The position numbers and the translations under genes are program-made. From sequence record MH791398.1: a DNA stretch of 64,000 bases. One strand, 5' to 3'. This document shows, one piece after another, positions 55,658 through 64,000 of the stretch; position 1 is the first letter of the stretch, and the number at the start of each line of letters is the position of its first letter. A model generated the notes under the pieces. The model made no database searches. It had not been told where the DNA came from and saw only the letters and a program-made list of their open reading frames with translations.

Positions 55658-55836
55658 AAGTCGACTTAACAAATTTAGACGTAAAACACTTAGAAACTAT
55701 CACTCTTATTATCGCACGATCTGCCGATATCATGACTCGTTTGACTCAAGCTAAAAAGGTTGGGTGTGTCACATTCGAATTGTCCGAAACTGAACTGAAA
55801 GATCTTAATACTATCAATTTGGGGATTACAGAATGA
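55654..55836 (+). CDS. Small hypothetical protein
   Basis: ATGA overlaps. Confidence 0.5.
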   Translation: MKVDLTNLDVKHLETITLIIARSADIMTRLTQAKKVGCVTFELSETELKDLNTINLGITE

Positions 55837-57011
55837 AAGAACTTTATAATAACCTGTTGAAGCTAACCGAAGAACATGGCGATTGTTTCTTCTTTCGTGA
55901 CCATTGGTCTTCCATTGGAAACCATTTTCGGGTATTCTCCTATCACATCGCAGGATTAACCCAATGGATGCTCCCAGACGCTCTAGAGTGTCGTGGTATC
56001 ATGTTTGAATTGGTTAACGGTGAACCGTACCGGATCGCATCTCGACCCATGGAAAAGTTTTTCAACCTAGCAGAACGCCAAGCATGGAACCTAACAAATT
56101 CCGGTGTTGTTGGACTCGATAAACTGGAATTGGATTATTCTAATATCGACCGATATGAAGATAAAGCAGATGGTAGTTTGGTGAGTTCTTATCACTTCAT
56201 CGACCCAGAAGACGACAATCGCATTAACTACATGTTGAAAAGTAAGACCTCAATTAATAGCGAACAGGCAAATGATGCAAATCGTTGGTTGGTGAACCAT
56301 ACAGACCTTTTGGACTTCGTTATCGATTGCGAAGAGGCAGGGTATACTGTGAATCTGGAATGGTGTTCTCCGAAGAACCAGATTGTTATTATGTATCCAG
56401 AAGAAAGCCTCAAGATCCTGAACGTCCGCCATCGTGATACTGGGGAATATTACTCAAACAACAAGTTGATTCGGTCTCCTGTGTTCCGCAAATATGCAGT
56501 AGATCAGTTCATGTTTGAAGAAGGTACGGATGTTAATGCCGCGATTTCGAACATGTACAACGAAACTGGGATCGAAGGATACATTCTGGTTATGAAAGAT
56601 GGTAGCCGAGTTAAGATCAAGACCACATCATATGTGGCTCGCCACAAGCTGAAAGACTCCATTACCAACAACAAGGATTTGGTAATTGCAGTTGCTCAAG
56701 GTGTGTCAGATGACCTACGTCAACTGTTTTTGGATGATTCGTTATCTCTAACAAAAATCCAAGAATTCGAAGACCATGTGGTTAGTGTTGCTGGCTCAAC
56801 TTATACCAAGATCCGAGAGGCCCATAAGGCTTGTGCTGGAATGGAACGACGCGAATACGCAATCTCTATGCAGAACACATTCAAACAAGACCGTATGTTC
56901 TTTAACATCGTGATGAAGATGTTCCAAGCACCGGATCTGGAAGTGATGCCAGAGATTATGGCAGTCGTTATCAAGTATCCGGAAGAATTTGTCCCAACTA
57001 AATGGAAATAA
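55833..57011 (+). CDS. rnlA: RNA ligase 1
   Basis: LECRGIMF, RPMEKFFN, motif I KADGS, LKSK, NLEW, motif IV EGYIL, VKIKT, RHKLK. Confidence 0.95.
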   Translation: MKELYNNLLKLTEEHGDCFFFRDHWSSIGNHFRVFSYHIAGLTQWMLPDALECRGIMFELVNGEPYRIASRPMEKFFNLAERQAWNLTNSGVVGLDKLELDYSNIDRYEDKADGSLVSSYHFIDPEDDNRINYMLKSKTSINSEQANDANRWLVNHTDLLDFVIDCEEAGYTVNLEWCSPKNQIVIMYPEESLKILNVRHRDTGEYYSNNKLIRSPVFRKYAVDQFMFEEGTDVNAAISNMYNETGIEGYILVMKDGSRVKIKTTSYVARHKLKDSITNNKDLVIAVAQGVSDDLRQLFLDDSLSLTKIQEFEDHVVSVAGSTYTKIREAHKACAGMERREYAISMQNTFKQDRMFFNIVMKMFQAPDLEVMPEIMAVVIKYPEEFVPTKWK

Positions 57012-57013
57012 AA

Positions 57014-57328
57014 ATGTCTATAATTTTGAATTGCATCGAAAAAGAAAATATCGAAAAGAATGACGTAACTGAAATATTTATCTCGCGACTTCGCGATCTA
57101 GGTATTAGAGTTGAAAATTCAACCCCGGTATTTGCTATTAGTACTATTGATGAAAAAAAGTGTTTTGAGATTAAATCTAGTTTGGTTTATGATATTGAAT
57201 ACACGATCAATAAAATAAAAGAAGCAGATCCTTATGTTGTTATGGTTGTTAGTGCAGAAGAGATAAAATATTTATCGACTGGTAAGAAAGAATATAAAAT
57301 TAGAATGGAAATATTGGCTCCAAAATGA
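57014..57328 (+). CDS. Hypothetical protein
   Basis: GGAAA SD. Confidence 0.5.
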   Translation: MSIILNCIEKENIEKNDVTEIFISRLRDLGIRVENSTPVFAISTIDEKKCFEIKSSLVYDIEYTINKIKEADPYVVMVVSAEEIKYLSTGKKEYKIRMEILAPK

Positions 57329-57339
57329 TGTAAAATAAG

Positions 57340-57390
57340 TTGACAGTATAATCTAAACCCTATATCATCAATGGTATAGGGTTTTTTACT
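57340..57390 (+). terminator. Terminator hairpin overlapping the -10 of an early promoter
   Basis: TTGACA(57340)-N17-TATCAT; AAACCCTATATCA...TGGTATAGGGTTT-TTTT. Confidence 0.7.
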
Positions 57391-57905: not shown

Positions 57906-58174
57906 TGGATCCAATCTTAGAAGTTCGTATGTGGTGGTCAATTGGTATTGTTTGTGTTGGGTTTCTTCTTCCGTTGTTTGTTTTGGCAATCAGACAGGTT
58001 TTCTTTAATAAAGATGTGACTTGGTATCAAGCGGCTGGATATGTTCTGTGGATCGCGTTGTGGGTGTCTTTCGGAAAAGAAATAATTCCAGAAAAATACG
58101 ATGTGAAAACCGAAAGGGTTTATCAATGTGAATGGGTGGATAGGACCGTACCGAAATACCCAAAAATTGATTGA
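57902..58174 (+). CDS. Two-TM membrane protein
   Basis: Two hydrophobic helices. Confidence 0.6.
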   Translation: MMDPILEVRMWWSIGIVCVGFLLPLFVLAIRQVFFNKDVTWYQAAGYVLWIALWVSFGKEIIPEKYDVKTERVYQCEWVDRTVPKYPKID

Positions 58175-58180
58175 CTATAA

Positions 58181-58507
58181 ATGAAAATCCTGTATCCTAT
58201 GTGGTACAGGATTTGTTTTGTGAGAGGTGGTATGAAAAACATTGGTTGGAAATACTATGTGGTTTCTGAAAATATGGGCGATGTGTTTGATTTCGAAGAA
58301 AAATTCGGGATTGCTGCCTTATCTTTGGATAACTCGATTAAGGTAGACACATCATTGGTATTAGTAACTCTATATCATGGTGAAATCATCGATCCTGTTC
58401 TTCATTTACCCCGTGTGTGGGTTCGTGGTGATGAATGTTGGCGCAACCCGAAGACAGGTGATGATCCGGTTTTTAAATTACTGAAAAAGTTTGGATATAT
58501 CAGTTGA
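58181..58507 (+). CDS. Hypothetical protein
   Basis: Packed ORF; the start may be downstream. Confidence 0.5.
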   Translation: MKILYPMWYRICFVRGGMKNIGWKYYVVSENMGDVFDFEEKFGIAALSLDNSIKVDTSLVLVTLYHGEIIDPVLHLPRVWVRGDECWRNPKTGDDPVFKLLKKFGYIS

Positions 58508-59404: not shown

Positions 59405-59791
59405 ATGTTTTGGTTGTTCAAAAAACATGTACCGAATATCAGACCGTTGGCGAAAAAGATTATCGAAGTAATAGACAACGACCCGTATACATGGAATCTG
59501 TCAAGAAAAAACGATGTTGATGGTTTAATCTTTACTTTTGAAATCGAAGAACCAAACCTACCAAGACGATTCAAGCCACATGAAATAAAATTGGTTTATC
59601 GTCAAGGTAACGTTTTGATTCATGAGATGAATGAACGTGGTATTTTACATAAAGACCAATTCAACCGGGATGAGAAAAAAGAATTGATACCCCGTTTGGA
59701 AGAGATCAAACGTAAATCAGAAATTCGCCAGTATAACATTATCGAAAACACAATCGCATATGGATTGAATAAAAGGGAACGATGGAAATGA
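59405..59791 (+). CDS. Hypothetical protein
   Basis: GAGGTG SD. Confidence 0.55.
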   Translation: MFWLFKKHVPNIRPLAKKIIEVIDNDPYTWNLSRKNDVDGLIFTFEIEEPNLPRRFKPHEIKLVYRQGNVLIHEMNERGILHKDQFNRDEKKELIPRLEEIKRKSEIRQYNIIENTIAYGLNKRERWK

Positions 59792-60051
59792 AAAGCTCCG
59801 AAATCCACAAAAAGATCACCGAGAAGCGAGAAGCTTTGATTCAAAACGCACTAAATTTCGTTTATGAATATCTTCTCAAAAAGACAAATGACTATAACGT
59901 GACGGTTAGTATCCCAAACGAGATCATCCCGTCCGAGATCCGTTCTGAACTGGTTGAGCGTATGGTCAAAGATGGATATGGGGTGTCTTGGTCTAAATCC
60001 AATGATATGTATAGCAGTTACTCCCGTCTTGTTGTTGTCATCAACGAATAA
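59782..60051 (+). CDS. Hypothetical protein
   Basis: Overlap-coupled. Confidence 0.55.
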   Translation: MEMKSSEIHKKITEKREALIQNALNFVYEYLLKKTNDYNVTVSIPNEIIPSEIRSELVERMVKDGYGVSWSKSNDMYSSYSRLVVVINE

Positions 60052-60074
60052 ATTTAAAATCAAGGAAATTAAAA

Positions 60075-60362
60075 ATGTTTGATAAAATCAAAGAAGAAAT
60101 GGATAAAATTGAAGCAGCCCACGCAGGCGGTGAGATGACTGCAAAACAAGCCGTGAGTACAGTTATTAAACTGTCAGAAATGATGGAAGATGTCGCAACT
60201 AAATTCGCTGATGCTGGTGTTGTATCATTTTCAGTGGGTGATTACGGTAGTGGTCGGACTTACTACCCGTTCGGTCATGAGTATTGGGATCTTGAACAAG
60301 CCGAAGATTACGGTCACGGTGACGGTCATGGTTATTGGATGAGTTCTTCGGATCAGTGTTAA
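60075..60362 (+). CDS. Small protein ending YWMSSSDQC
   Basis: AAGGA SD; helical N-terminus and Gly/Tyr/Asp-rich C-terminus. Confidence 0.75.
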   Translation: MFDKIKEEMDKIEAAHAGGEMTAKQAVSTVIKLSEMMEDVATKFADAGVVSFSVGDYGSGRTYYPFGHEYWDLEQAEDYGHGDGHGYWMSSSDQC

Positions 60363-60386
60363 TTTTTAAACAAAAGGAAAAATAAA

Positions 60387-60614
60387 ATGTCTCGTAGTAA
60401 TGAACTGGTAGAAAAAGCAAAACAACTGGCTGTACTCCTGAAAGAAGTACGTGATCTTGCTGGTCAGCACGATTATGGTGTAGAACTAGACACAGACTCC
60501 GATGAGATTGTGTTTAATGACTGGCTAAGTAGCTCTTGTTATGGTGAAGGTGGTGAAGGTTTTACCGTGTCTGTTGATGCAGAACCTAGCTACTGGGAAG
60601 AAAGTAGTTGCTAA
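60387..60614 (+). CDS. Small protein with WLSSSC and terminal YWEESSC
   Basis: AAGGA SD; carries the motif twice. Confidence 0.75.
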   Translation: MSRSNELVEKAKQLAVLLKEVRDLAGQHDYGVELDTDSDEIVFNDWLSSSCYGEGGEGFTVSVDAEPSYWEESSC

Positions 60615-60663
60615 TTTGATGAAATGGGGTCGTATTGACCCCATAAATTTTGAGGGTAATATT

Positions 60664-61572
60664 ATGATTTTGATTGGTTCTCGTGCTATGTTGGAATGCT
60701 TCTACGCTGATAGTATGGCCCCAACTAAAGATATGGATTATGATTTCATTTCCACTGAACAAGAATGGAGTGAATACCAAGCTCGTATGCAAGGCCGCTC
60801 TGTAGCCGTACAGAATCCAAATGTACGAGCTTTTGTGGTTGGGCGCGGTGATAGTCGGAGTTGCTATCACGAGGCTTATATCATTCAACCGGGGTCGTCT
60901 GATGAGATGATTGCTGACTACATGAATAACGAACATGGTAAGATCAAGGTAGCTACTCCCGGTCTACTTCTTGCGATTAAGATGTCCCACCGGTTCAAAA
61001 AGAACACGCGCAATTTCATCAAAACCATGAAATCCATTCACGAACTTCGTGACTTTGGTGTGGTGATGAATGAAAAAGAATTCGAGATCTTCAAGAAACG
61101 TGAAAAAGAATCCTTGACTTATGGACACCCAAAGCTTAATGTAGGTAAGAAAGATTTCTTCACCGATGATTTTTACACTATGGATCACGACACAGTTCAC
61201 CAAGCTATTGCCGTTGGAGAACGACCCGCTTATTTGTCATACATGGTTGATGGTGAAGAAGTGATGACATCAAAAACGAAGTTTGAACAGTGTGATATGC
61301 GTATTAAACTTCTTGGTGTATACGAAGAAGCTTGCGTTTTGGCACTAGAACGGTGTATAGTACCATTTCCGGGTAAGGTTCATCCAGCCAAAGCTTTTAT
61401 GATGGCATTGGAAAAGGTTTGTACTTCTATCACTTCTGGATGGTTTCGCGAGTATGCATACGAGAACTATACAAACGTGATGGATATTTATAATGAACAA
61501 ACCAAGATTGGGGAGAACTACGTTCAACTCTTCCTCAAGAACCAACACATGATTAAGCCATTTGAGGGTTAA
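60664..61572 (+). CDS. Uncharacterised nucleotidyltransferase-like protein
   Basis: ILIGSRAM...DMDYD (GS + DxD). C-terminal domain with DHDTVHQ and EEACVLALER. GAGGG SD, ATG at 60664. Confidence 0.65.
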   Translation: MILIGSRAMLECFYADSMAPTKDMDYDFISTEQEWSEYQARMQGRSVAVQNPNVRAFVVGRGDSRSCYHEAYIIQPGSSDEMIADYMNNEHGKIKVATPGLLLAIKMSHRFKKNTRNFIKTMKSIHELRDFGVVMNEKEFEIFKKREKESLTYGHPKLNVGKKDFFTDDFYTMDHDTVHQAIAVGERPAYLSYMVDGEEVMTSKTKFEQCDMRIKLLGVYEEACVLALERCIVPFPGKVHPAKAFMMALEKVCTSITSGWFREYAYENYTNVMDIYNEQTKIGENYVQLFLKNQHMIKPFEG

Positions 61573-61575
61573 GAT

Positions 61576-61839
61576 ATGTTTGCACTTGCACATAAAGAAA
61601 CTGGGAAGTTTGTAGGTTGGGAGGTGTTTACCAGCTACATAGATGGAGAAACAGACTATTGTCTAACAGAACCGGAATTCTCTAACAACGTTTGGTGTCT
61701 ATTGGCTTATATGGATGTCAAGCGTATTCTCGAAAGGGGAGAAATTAAAAGAGGGTTCAACACATTTTATTCAGATCCGGACGTTGATTTCTCTCTGGAT
61801 GAATATGAAATTGTGGTTCTAACTGGGGTAAAAGTATAA
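61576..61839 (+). CDS. Hypothetical protein; paralog of 26540
   Basis: MFALAHKETGKFVG...EYEIVVL. Confidence 0.6.
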   Translation: MFALAHKETGKFVGWEVFTSYIDGETDYCLTEPEFSNNVWCLLAYMDVKRILERGEIKRGFNTFYSDPDVDFSLDEYEIVVLTGVKV

Positions 61840-61999
61840 TGGAATTTATCATCAACGACGGGTTGTATGTTGCTTTATGTGCTCTTGTTTCAATCGGTGC
61901 TCATATGTGGAATCGGAATTGGGCTCTTTGGATGGTTGGTTCGGTCTTGTTTAGTCCAGTCATTTCAGGAATTTTACTGATGCTCGCGGGTAAAAAGGA

Positions 62000-62320
62000 A
62001 TGAAATTCGATGTAAAAATTGGCCCTAGTGTTTTCATGGTACAATCTGATGAATCACCCGACGATCTATTTGAAATGCGAGGTGGAGTAAAAACCAGAGA
62101 CGGGTTTATTCTAGGGCAATACAGGTACATCAAACCTTGGGTCGTTCATTGCCAAGATTGGGAGAATATGTTTAATATGTTCTCTTTCAATGAGGAACCG
62201 ATAAAACGAAGCATAGTCATATCTAACGGAGAAAAGATCTGGTATGCAGAAGGTTGTTTCGTTAGTGAATATGTGTACACAACCAAGAGTCTTTTTATAC
62301 TCATAGATTGGATTGGATAA
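62000..62320 (+). CDS. Hypothetical protein
   Basis: ATG at 62000. Confidence 0.5.
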   Translation: MKFDVKIGPSVFMVQSDESPDDLFEMRGGVKTRDGFILGQYRYIKPWVVHCQDWENMFNMFSFNEEPIKRSIVISNGEKIWYAEGCFVSEYVYTTKSLFILIDWIG

Positions 62321-62620: not shown

Positions 62621-62650
62621 TTGACTGGGTATCTCAGAAATGGGATACTC
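62621..62650 (+). promoter_or_regulatory. Early promoter with an internal inverted repeat
   Basis: TTGACT-N17-GATACT; GGGTATCTC-6nt-GGGATACTC. Confidence 0.7.
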
Positions 62651-62891: not shown

Positions 62892-63578
62892 ATGAATAGC
62901 AAAAAGATTTTTAATTCCAAGTTCCAGAATCTCGGACAGTTCGCTCAACATGTATCAGATGACGAAATCAAGAACGAACCTATGTTCTTCAACTGCGATT
63001 TGGCTTTTGCTATAAATCATGGTGGTCCTATAACTAGGAGTTTCATCGCCAAATTACCGGAAGAATGGCAATATGGCGATGTTGTGTTTGATTCTCGTGT
63101 ACACATGCTTATGCCCGGTTGGTATCCCGCAATCCCCGGTTATCATCATGATGATGTTCCGCGCCCGGACATCCCTGTAGGTCAGCATTTCATCACCGCA
63201 GGTCAACCAGACTATGACAACCCTCGTTATATGTCTGAACATATTCTTGGTTTGGTTAACGGTGATATCTGCCCTACTCATTTTGCAGTAGGAGAAGCCG
63301 AGTTTAGCCAAGTTCCAGATGGCGAACTCATTTACCGCCAATGGCACAAAGAAGTTTTGGAAAAGATTGACAATGGTGAACTGGTGTTGCATACTGCCCC
63401 TGACCGGACGTTGTTACAGTTTGATTGGCAAACATGGCACACCGGGTCGAAGACGGTTGGTAACGGTTGGCGCTGGTTTGGTCGTGTATCCCGTAACACA
63501 GATCGTGTAAAGAAAATCAGTAATGAAATTCGTCGCAACGCACAAGTTTACCTTGAGTTCCCGATGGAAGGCTGGTAA
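62892..63578 (+). CDS. Putative 2-oxoglutarate/Fe(II) dioxygenase (DSBH fold)
   Basis: HxD in PGYHHDD, distal His in WHTG, and Arg in GWRWFGR. Confidence 0.65.
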   Translation: MNSKKIFNSKFQNLGQFAQHVSDDEIKNEPMFFNCDLAFAINHGGPITRSFIAKLPEEWQYGDVVFDSRVHMLMPGWYPAIPGYHHDDVPRPDIPVGQHFITAGQPDYDNPRYMSEHILGLVNGDICPTHFAVGEAEFSQVPDGELIYRQWHKEVLEKIDNGELVLHTAPDRTLLQFDWQTWHTGSKTVGNGWRWFGRVSRNTDRVKKISNEIRRNAQVYLEFPMEGW

Positions 63579-63645
63579 AAATATAGTTGACACAGAAAAC
63601 AAAACAATTTAATATCTAATCTCAATAAACAAAAAGGAAATAAAA

Positions 63646-64000
63646 ATGAAAACTCTGAAACAAATCTGGGCATTTATCACCGCTAAAATCCTGACCTTCA
63701 CCACCAAAAACGTTACCGTCGAAGATCAGTATACCGGGGCGGCTGAACGGATTATCAACGAAATCACCCGTCTTCGCACCGCACACGTCAAGTCTATCAA
63801 AGAAGAAAAACGGCTCCGTAGTCTGGCAGAAGAGAAAACCAATCTCGCGGTTAAGAAAGAAAACGAGATTCGTGGTCTTCTCAAGAAAGGGGTGAATGTA
63901 GAAAGTCACGGTAAGCTGGGTATCCTGTATCGTCGGACTTCCGAGGCCCTTACCAAGAAGGCTGATGAGTTTGTTGGGATGCGCTCCGAGATCGAGGTTG
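63646..64000 (+). CDS. T4 e.6-like coiled-coil (PspA-like) protein, truncated by window end
   Basis: VEDQYTGAA...KSIKEEKRLR...HGKLGILYRRT matches T4 e.6 as recalled. TTGACA promoter at about 63586. Confidence 0.8.
   Translation, partial: MKTLKQIWAFITAKILTFTTKNVTVEDQYTGAAERIINEITRLRTAHVKSIKEEKRLRSLAEEKTNLAVKKENEIRGLLKKGVNVESHGKLGILYRRTSEALTKKADEFVGMRSEIEV

Follow-up and report, generated by a model that had tools for sequence, protein, structure and literature searches.

Small acidic proteins with a shared W-x-x-S-S...C tail and a putative Pol-β-type nucleotidyltransferase form a conserved two-part module in T4-like and other phages

Introduction

What connects two small proteins that end in nearly the same few residues to the enzyme encoded directly downstream of them, and could that enzyme act on the shared ending? 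The question is raised by a 64,000-nt stretch of sequence record MH791398.1 (hereafter the window), in which the genes of two small acidic proteins, A (95 amino acids (aa); 60075..60362, + strand) and B (75 aa; 60387..60614, + strand), are followed by the gene of a 302-aa nucleotidyltransferase-like enzyme composed of the Pfam domains DUF7277 and DUF7275 (60664..61572, + strand). A terminates in YWMSSSDQC-stop (aa 87-95; 60333..60359, + strand) and B in YWEESSC-stop (aa 69-75; 60591..60611, + strand), and B carries an additional internal copy of the motif, DWLSSSCY (aa 45-52; 60519..60542, + strand). These motifs had been pointed out in an initial annotation made from the sequence alone, and all three are present where it placed them. 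The same annotation proposed that the small proteins and the enzyme constitute a substrate/modifier system, possibly one that resembles ribosomally synthesized and posttranslationally modified peptides (RiPPs). We found that the small-protein/enzyme module is upheld by gene co-occurrence, while its interpretation as a RiPP leader and core is not.

Results

The small proteins and the enzyme are kept together across phage lineages

Among the 1,088 open reading frames (ORFs) of at least 30 aa in the window, only the adjoining A and B have an ending of the form W-x(1-2)-S-S-x(0-3)-C, which rules out chance as the origin of the shared ending. The decisive check suggested at the outset was whether homologs of the enzyme stand beside such ORFs in other genomes. 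In 80 viral loci retrieved through the enzyme, 202 of the 209 tail-motif ORFs were located on the enzyme's strand and at most 3.5 kb upstream, a zone that contains 7.6% of all ORFs; the number of tail-motif ORFs per locus ranged from one to five. The reverse search, which used an alignment of a different small-protein subtype, led to 36 new loci, and the enzyme was encoded within 2 kb downstream on the same strand in 35 of them; in the single exception, the contig stops ~100 bp past the small genes. Since many loci are related to each other, we also counted lineages. When the enzymes were clustered at 60% identity, 38 of 42 lineages were accompanied by the small ORFs, and two further ones (L009 and L131) were missed solely because of the distance filter, giving 38-40 of 42. 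The exceptions comprised four related loci whose tag-bearing ORFs are on the strand opposite to the enzyme gene and roughly 5-7 kb away from it, two identical loci with a variant ending in C-S-Y, and one locus with its upstream DNA missing.

The pair is present in Ceceduovirus, Mosigvirus, Dhakavirus, Lazarusvirus, Otagovirus, Phapecoctavirus, and Busanvirus, as well as in jumbo-phage contigs of 355-371 kb. Its position differs between these genomes: in the window it follows rnlA, coliphages have it between e.6/e.8 and e.2/nudE, and in Acinetobacter phage AM101 it is flanked by genes 41 and 61. No third conserved gene travels with the enzyme across lineages. A pattern scan of 185,579 species genomes yielded five enzyme loci, all on contigs of metagenome-assembled genomes and all with small ORFs upstream. 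Tail-motif ORFs were absent beside three distant homologs, from Streptomyces, Gordonia, and Vibrio K412 phages (L084, L085, and L086), whose DUF7275 proteins of 251-263 aa match just the first 27-37 positions of DUF7277. That a truncated DUF7277 goes together with the absence of tail ORFs is, with three cases, a hint rather than a rule. The Streptomyces phage copy is found 1.3 kb downstream of an RNA ligase gene, and the Vibrio K412 phage copy adjoins NAD-salvage genes. Because the co-occurrence holds in both directions and across distant phage lineages, a functional link is well founded; as judged from gene conservation, the small proteins and the enzyme are shown to be a two-part module under joint selection.

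The C-terminal tail is the common element of a family of small acidic proteins

Searching 1.84 billion representative sequences with an A-type profile retrieved 173 representative clusters at E <= 0.001. We examined 156 family proteins that were profile matches and had not been chosen for their tail; among the matches listed, together with relatives found earlier, 141 of the 156 end in cysteine and 140 end in the motif. The great majority of the distinct tail-motif ORFs from related loci (174 of 181) fell into one single-linkage BLAST cluster. For motif statistics, 319 members were anchored on the tryptophan; as they were selected by the motif, the figures for the tryptophan and for serine at +3 are partly circular. 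The residue directly after the tryptophan is variable, whereupon serine occupies position +2 in 73%, +3 in 100%, and +4 in 96% of these members, and the terminal cysteine is 7 residues away from the tryptophan in 272, 5 in 35, and 8 in 9. Family lengths range from 41 to 175 aa with a median of 88 aa. The isoelectric point (pI) is below 5 in 90% of the 319 proteins, the terminal cysteine is the sole one in 140, and extra internal W-x-x-S-x-C-like copies occur in 44. No small-protein subtype is present everywhere, and the tail alone is common to all. A few tail-bearing proteins fall outside the main BLAST cluster. One of the proteins encoded upstream of the enzyme, on a metagenomic phage contig (L079 8449-9027), consists of an N-terminal WYL_2 domain (an Sm-like SH3 barrel), an acidic linker, and the same C-terminal tail, which shows that an unrelated domain can bear the tail.

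A and B had been regarded as otherwise dissimilar, and BLASTP indeed detected no similarity between them (E 0.64). However, both match PHROG 899 (E 2e-19 for A, which is also an annotated coding sequence in relatives, and E 1.2e-6 for B), and hhalign aligned the A-type and B-type subfamily profiles with 94.3% probability (E 9.6e-8). On the strength of these two results, we accept their kinship and, by profile comparison, regard A and B as distant paralogs of one family, PHROG 899. The comparison of A5, which belongs to the YGMGG subtype, with the B-type profile gave no signal.

A has a pI of 4.5, a single cysteine that is its last residue, and represents the family subtype with a Gly-rich loop. 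This loop and the second strand (GDYGSGRTYYP, aa 55-65; 60237..60269, + strand) stand out by conservation: D56, Y57, G58, G60, R61, T62, Y63, Y64, and P65 show no variation within the close subfamily, and over 136 family members G58 and Y63 reach at least 90% conservation. Conservation likewise marks the tag of A: in 136 sequences, a set itself chosen for the tail, W88, S91, and C95 never vary and S92 is conserved to at least 90%. B, with a pI of 4.05 and two cysteines, is of the subtype that carries two motif copies, both of which are supported by the B-type alignment; its invariant residues are D45, W46, S49, C51, G53, E54, W70, S73, S74, and C75.

The AlphaFold2 model of A, built from 136 sequences, predicted a confident fold, with a predicted local distance difference test (pLDDT) score of 88.4. 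In the model, a helical hairpin (residues 2-17 and 23-48) packs on a three-stranded sheet (52-54, 61-64, and 87-90), and the final five residues form a short turn. Thus, the W-x-S stretch of A is predicted to be the third strand of the domain and not a floppy peptide. With the tail as part of a predicted folded domain (pLDDT 88), the suggestion that A and B are RiPP leader-plus-core peptides finds no support; moreover, no maturase, protease, or exporter family is encoded nearby. Foldseek comparison of the A model with the Protein Data Bank (PDB) returned nothing better than E 0.5, with only coiled-coil matches to RNA polymerase. The small proteins lack a conserved Arg...His pair in the alignment of 136 sequences and have no HEPN Pfam match, and none of the PHROG matches of the module proteins carries an assigned function.

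The enzyme has the signature and the predicted fold of a Pol-β-type nucleotidyltransferase

The enzyme gene starts at 60664, which is also the start annotated in relatives. Its product matches DUF7277 (E 1e-20, 74.7 bits) and DUF7275 (E 2.1e-71, 240 bits), both above the cut-off of 27, as well as PHROG 2141 (E 8.8e-126). The N-terminal α/β domain, DUF7277 (aa 1-87; 60664..60924, + strand), contains the putative catalytic residues G5-S6, D25-x-D27, and E70, while the helical domain, DUF7275 (aa 102-288; 60967..61527, + strand), is rich in invariant polar residues. The motifs highlighted previously, with IGS at aa 4-6, D25-x-D27, DHDTVH at aa 174-179, and EEACVLALER at aa 221-230, were all recovered in the 302-aa protein, and most of their residues are invariant in 59 homologs of 43-68% identity. 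In this set, G5, S6, D25, D27, and E70 are invariant, and the invariant residues of DUF7275 include K106, H109, H155, H175, D176, H179, E221, E222, C224, E229, R230, K251, and C253. The description of the enzyme as an orphan had to be abandoned, as homologs were found in 2,457 protein clusters (90% identity; E <= 0.001) and in 731 phage records (tblastn E <= 1e-5).

In the AlphaFold2 model of the enzyme (pLDDT 91.6), a first strand (2-4) is followed by the G-S helix (5-13), the D-x-D strand (26-30), a helix, and three strands, the last of which (67-73) carries E70. The predicted order of strands and helices is that of the Pol-β nucleotidyltransferase (NTase) core, with hG[GS] at the start of the helix after the first strand, D-x-D on the second strand, and E70 as the third carboxylate. 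The top three Foldseek matches among solved structures, namely two MenT1 chains and 5uvd, are all NTase-fold proteins. They are weak: the MenT1 match (8an4) had an E value of 1.1e-3, a probability of 1.00, and a target-normalized TM score of 0.46, the match to the NTase-like protein 5uvd had an E value of 0.017, terminal uridylyltransferases and poly(A) polymerases ranked lower, and no solved structure matched at E < 1e-3. The helical domain had no solved-structure match, and no solved structure covered the region of ~110 aa at about aa 190-302. Foldseek also detected the enzyme fold in giant-virus proteins.

Named NTase families of Pfam gave no match above noise in the enzyme or in any of the 59 homologs, NCBIfam had no match to the enzyme, and the PDB sequence search, with the single sequence and with the profile, returned noise only. 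Among the PADLOC defense models, we obtained one noise-level match (PD-Lambda-5_B, E 0.022), and no named anti-defense family was hit. The proposed Pol-β-type identity is borne out as a sequence signature and a predicted fold, and we consider the NTase assignment well motivated, resting as it does on motifs and modeled fold and not on family membership. A longer version of the enzyme, an ORF of 411 aa, occurs in a 168-kb phage genome (L119 6551-7786; IMG/VR UViG 650627003), where an extension of 100-105 aa precedes DUF7277. We considered it as a candidate fusion of a small protein with the enzyme and rejected it, since the extension is a different domain.

A stem-loop separates the small-protein genes from the enzyme gene

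Between the genes of B and of the enzyme, folding predicts a stem-loop with an 8-bp stem, a 5-nt loop, and no U-tract (60624..60644, + strand); the original description of a hairpin lacking a strong U-tract was accurate in this respect. In a context of 71 nt, it folds with -18.9 kcal/mol (z -3.3), and none of 200 shuffled sequences folds as well. The terminator scan did not call it. Other lineages provided 17 distinct short intergenic regions, of which 13 have a GC-rich stem-loop at the corresponding position. These stem-loops differ entirely in sequence; several carry a U-tract, and some precede a promoter-like site. Since the position of the stem-loop is conserved and its sequence is not, a regulatory role such as attenuation is suggested. 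The stem-loop probably attenuates read-through or stabilizes the upstream RNA, and attenuation would result in more small protein than enzyme.

The translation initiation regions of A (60057-60080) and B (60369-60392) are near-identical and A-rich, of the AAGGAAA type, unlike the ribosome-binding site of the enzyme gene, which is GAGGG. The same near-identical AAGGAAA-type region also precedes two other genes (56996-57019 and 63628-63651). A sigma-70-like site at 60635-60662 was taken as a chance occurrence because transcription from it would begin inside the enzyme gene.

Genomic setting of the module

Over the region 59700-62100, the window shares 100% identity with Aeromonas phages Asswx_1, AsSzw2, and Aszh-1; with CC2 and AS-zj, the figure is 92-93%. 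CC2 is classified as Straboviridae, Emmerichvirinae, Ceceduovirus, and by sequence identity the source of the window is an Aeromonas T4-like phage of the genus Ceceduovirus. The genes of A, B, and the enzyme belong to a long series of small same-strand genes downstream of rnlA (55833-57011). In relatives, all three are annotated coding sequences, each labeled "hypothetical protein," and a domain scan of the window neighbors of the module gave no informative domains.

Three sites in the window (57340-57384, 58171-58214, and 62621-62650) combine a sigma-70-like promoter with an overlapping stem-loop of 10-13 bp followed by a T-run. Promoter/stem-loop cassettes (PeSLs) have been described as shuffling points of T4-type phage genomes (PMC2839356, PMC4122927). 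The three composite sites resemble PeSLs, and the module is located between the second and the third of them. Immediately upstream of A, an 89-aa ORF (59782-60051) has a subthreshold Pfam match to DNA α-glucosyltransferase (AGT), covering profile positions 235-289 of 355 (E 5.8e-5; 22.8 bits versus a cut-off of 25). By this similarity, the ORF could represent either a short remnant of a DNA-modification gene or a relative of such a gene that is the size of a domain.

In CC2, an HNH endonuclease gene (L001 7896-8528) is inserted directly after the enzyme gene, ahead of the homolog of the window ORF 61576-61839. This insertion is absent after position 61572 of the window, and phage Assk shows a two-piece match like CC2 with a gap of similar size. 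Further downstream, positions 62892-63578 encode a 228-aa protein without a Pfam match. In Aeromonas and enterobacterial T4-like phages, 24 loci encode a relative 1-3 kb downstream of the enzyme, a placement not seen in other lineages; the one in IME08 is annotated as similar to RB69 ORF132c.

Discussion

We propose that the locus encodes a two-component phage module, made of one to five small acidic, folded proteins and a downstream Pol-β-type nucleotidyltransferase (DUF7277-DUF7275). The small proteins would share little except a portable C-terminal tag, W-x-x-S-S followed by a cysteine at or next to the C terminus. The enzyme would dock this tag and move a nucleotidyl group from a nucleoside triphosphate onto the hydroxyl of a tag serine or, less likely, onto the cysteine. 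Such nucleotidylylation could switch the small proteins on, switch them off, or redirect them. Their variable N-terminal parts would be the working ends, which probably bind host proteins early in infection, while the stem-loop or terminator ahead of the enzyme gene would ensure that more small protein than enzyme is made. The terminal cysteine might tether the tail to invariant cysteine and histidine residues in the helical domain of the enzyme, or might join later chemistry. Tag recognition and its chemistry, the identity of the acceptor, and the function during infection are all inferred, and we put the probability that the enzyme recognizes a portable tag and nucleotidylylates one of its serines at roughly 0.4.

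Pol-β-fold enzymes use hydroxyl nucleophiles and include the protein O-nucleotidylyltransferases GlnD, GlnE, and the MNT of HEPN-MNT, which is why we favor serine nucleotidylylation over other chemistries. Serine is favored as the acceptor also because the two serines at fixed spacing from the tryptophan are the most conserved polar positions of the tag. In addition, the presence of several divergent partners per enzyme and of the tag on unrelated proteins makes the small proteins look like substrates rather than a single cognate inhibitor. Several points weigh against this proposal. The tag is predicted to lie partly inside the fold (strand 87-90) instead of forming a free tail, and the distance of the terminal cysteine from the tryptophan varies (5, 7, or 8 residues), so that the proposal does not account for this cysteine. 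The NTase assignment itself derives from motifs and weak structure matches, with no named NTase family of Pfam behind it. Last, MenT1, the closest solved structure, acts on tRNA and not on protein (PMC10435456).

An extension of the proposal, which we regard as doubtful, is that W-x-x-S-S...C is a portable tag that marks a set of phage effectors for one dedicated enzyme, with a chemistry undescribed in phages. The possibilities within it are a switch by serine O-nucleotidylylation, activation of serine followed by a thioether to the terminal cysteine, and a protein-primed nucleotide tail.

Enzymes of the NTase class are known to put a nucleotide-derived group onto the hydroxyl of a small protein, as in GlnD with PII, GlnE with glutamine synthetase, and CitX/MdcG; GlnD pairs its NTase domain with a His/Asp-rich removing domain, and CitX and MdcG modify a serine of a small acidic acyl-carrier protein. 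The likeness of our module to these systems is a functional analogy alone, and searches with the enzyme gave no sequence or structure match to them. The closest precedent for the proposed chemistry is HEPN-MNT, the type VII toxin-antitoxin system, in which a Pol-β-fold NTase covalently adds a nucleoside monophosphate to a hydroxyl side chain of the adjacently encoded small partner (PMC11586414). The partners described here differ in lacking the conserved R-x(4-6)-H motif of HEPN, and the proposed acceptor is a serine or cysteine of a C-terminal tag, whereas it is a tyrosine in HEPN-MNT. Furthermore, the 302-aa enzyme has a large helical domain and is not a minimal NTase, and it is found in phages with several partners.

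The MenA1-MenT1 pair resembles the module in that the gene of a small helical protein immediately precedes that of an NTase-fold enzyme, and in MenAT1 the small partner lies across the active site of MenT1 (PMC10435456). DUF1814 is defined by four signature motifs, including S/T-x-D at motif II and a DUF1814-specific motif IV (PMC10435456). Compared with these MenT/AbiEii proteins, our enzyme has no DUF1814 (PF08843-type) match and carries D-x-D where motif II is expected; K106 is a possible counterpart of the motif III lysine, and no aligned motif IV aspartate was identified. An additional helical stretch, spanning about aa 190-302 (roughly 110 aa), further sets it apart. The number and kind of partners differ too, with one to five proteins carrying a conserved C-terminal tag in place of the one cognate helix of MenT1, as does the setting, which is lytic phages for the module and cellular genomes for MenAT. 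A likeness to lanthipeptides and other RiPPs lies in the several paralogous genes upstream of one enzyme and in a Ser...Cys spacing compatible with a thioether ring. In contrast to RiPPs, the proteins are predicted to be folded, are 41-175 aa long, and have the motif within the fold, and RiPP enzyme, protease, and exporter families are missing nearby. By analogy, the module would work most like the pairs of an NTase and a small partner (MenA1-MenT1 and HEPN-MNT), but it lacks the features that define them. As assigned by profile matches, its proteins belong only to families without a function, namely PHROG 899, PHROG 2141, DUF7277, and DUF7275.

The proposal of tag nucleotidylylation has to be weighed against other explanations of the same pairing. 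The enzyme might instead be a MenT/AbiEii-like nucleotidyltransferase that acts on the 3' ends of RNA or tRNA, against host translation or in its repair, with the small proteins as antitoxin-like plugs or pseudo-substrates. The best solved-structure match is to the MenT1 toxin, whose active site is blocked by a helical antitoxin of 68 aa encoded ahead of it (PMC10435456), and A is likewise N-terminally helical and encoded upstream; the intergenic stem-loop would supply an excess of inhibitor, and the module of the window lies near rnlA. We nevertheless consider this explanation unlikely. One to five divergent paralogs per enzyme and a tag on an unrelated WYL_2 protein are unlike a cognate inhibitor, and it is the tail that is conserved and not the helices, by which MenA1 binds. 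The D-x-D of the enzyme contrasts with the T/S-x-D of MenT1 and MenT3; the enzyme matches no DUF1814 profile and was found at only five loci in the 185,579 species genomes, all on metagenome-assembled contigs. Still less probable is a RiPP-like crosslink, in which the enzyme would activate a tag serine that is then eliminated, so that the cysteine thiol adds to form a C-terminal thioether ring. All members do have the two serines at fixed spacing from the tryptophan with a cysteine 1-4 residues later, and Ser-to-Cys spacings of this kind are typical of the lanthionine rings of lanthipeptides; the invariant acidic and histidine residues of DUF7275 could serve a second, lyase-type step. However, the tail is inside a predicted folded domain, a leader/core architecture is missing, and the neighborhood contains no gene for LanB/LanM/LanC, YcaO, a radical-SAM protein, a protease, or an exporter. 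It also counts against the crosslink that we know of no precedent for serine nucleotidylylation followed by elimination.

We give similarly little credence to the idea that the small proteins are interchangeable targeting or specificity subunits, anchored to the enzyme by the tag and bringing it host protein, RNA, or small-molecule targets through their variable bodies. A conserved tag on divergent bodies, several paralogs per genome, and the very strongly conserved surfaces of DUF7275 would all suit such an arrangement, but the bodies have a median length of just 88 aa and are uniformly acidic (90% with pI below 5), and a stem-loop favoring an excess of small protein fits substrates or inhibitors better than stoichiometric subunits. 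The last alternative is adjacency without function, reflecting shared ancestry and conserved gene order, with the tail as a structural feature of one fold. T4-like phages broadly keep their gene order, many of the loci are mutually related, and the motif supplies a strand to the predicted fold. Yet the two stay together although their place in the genome and all their other neighbors change, the pair is present in 38-40 of 42 enzyme lineages (60% identity) that include phage groups without general synteny, the reverse test held in 35 of 36 loci, and the motif also occurs on proteins outside the main family cluster. Chance or synteny is thus effectively excluded as the explanation.

In about 8.4 million searchable papers and preprints, queried for DUF7275/DUF7277, the PHROG families, the RB69 ORFs, and nucleotidylylation of phage proteins, we found no description of the module, which would be categorically new if its chemistry proves to be new. 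It is widespread and occurs in well-studied coliphage groups (RB69 and JS98 types), yet both of its parts are labeled as having unknown function. The strict linkage of enzyme and tag provides a precise, testable handle on an opaque block of early phage genes. Modification of the tag by the enzyme, if it occurs, would make the module a new type of enzyme-controlled effector set in phage-host biology, and it would assign a function to two Pfam domains of unknown function and several PHROGs together. Should the tag indeed mark a set of effectors for one dedicated enzyme, this would constitute a new class of viral posttranslational control that spans Straboviridae, Otagovirus, Phapecoctavirus, Busanvirus, and jumbo phages.

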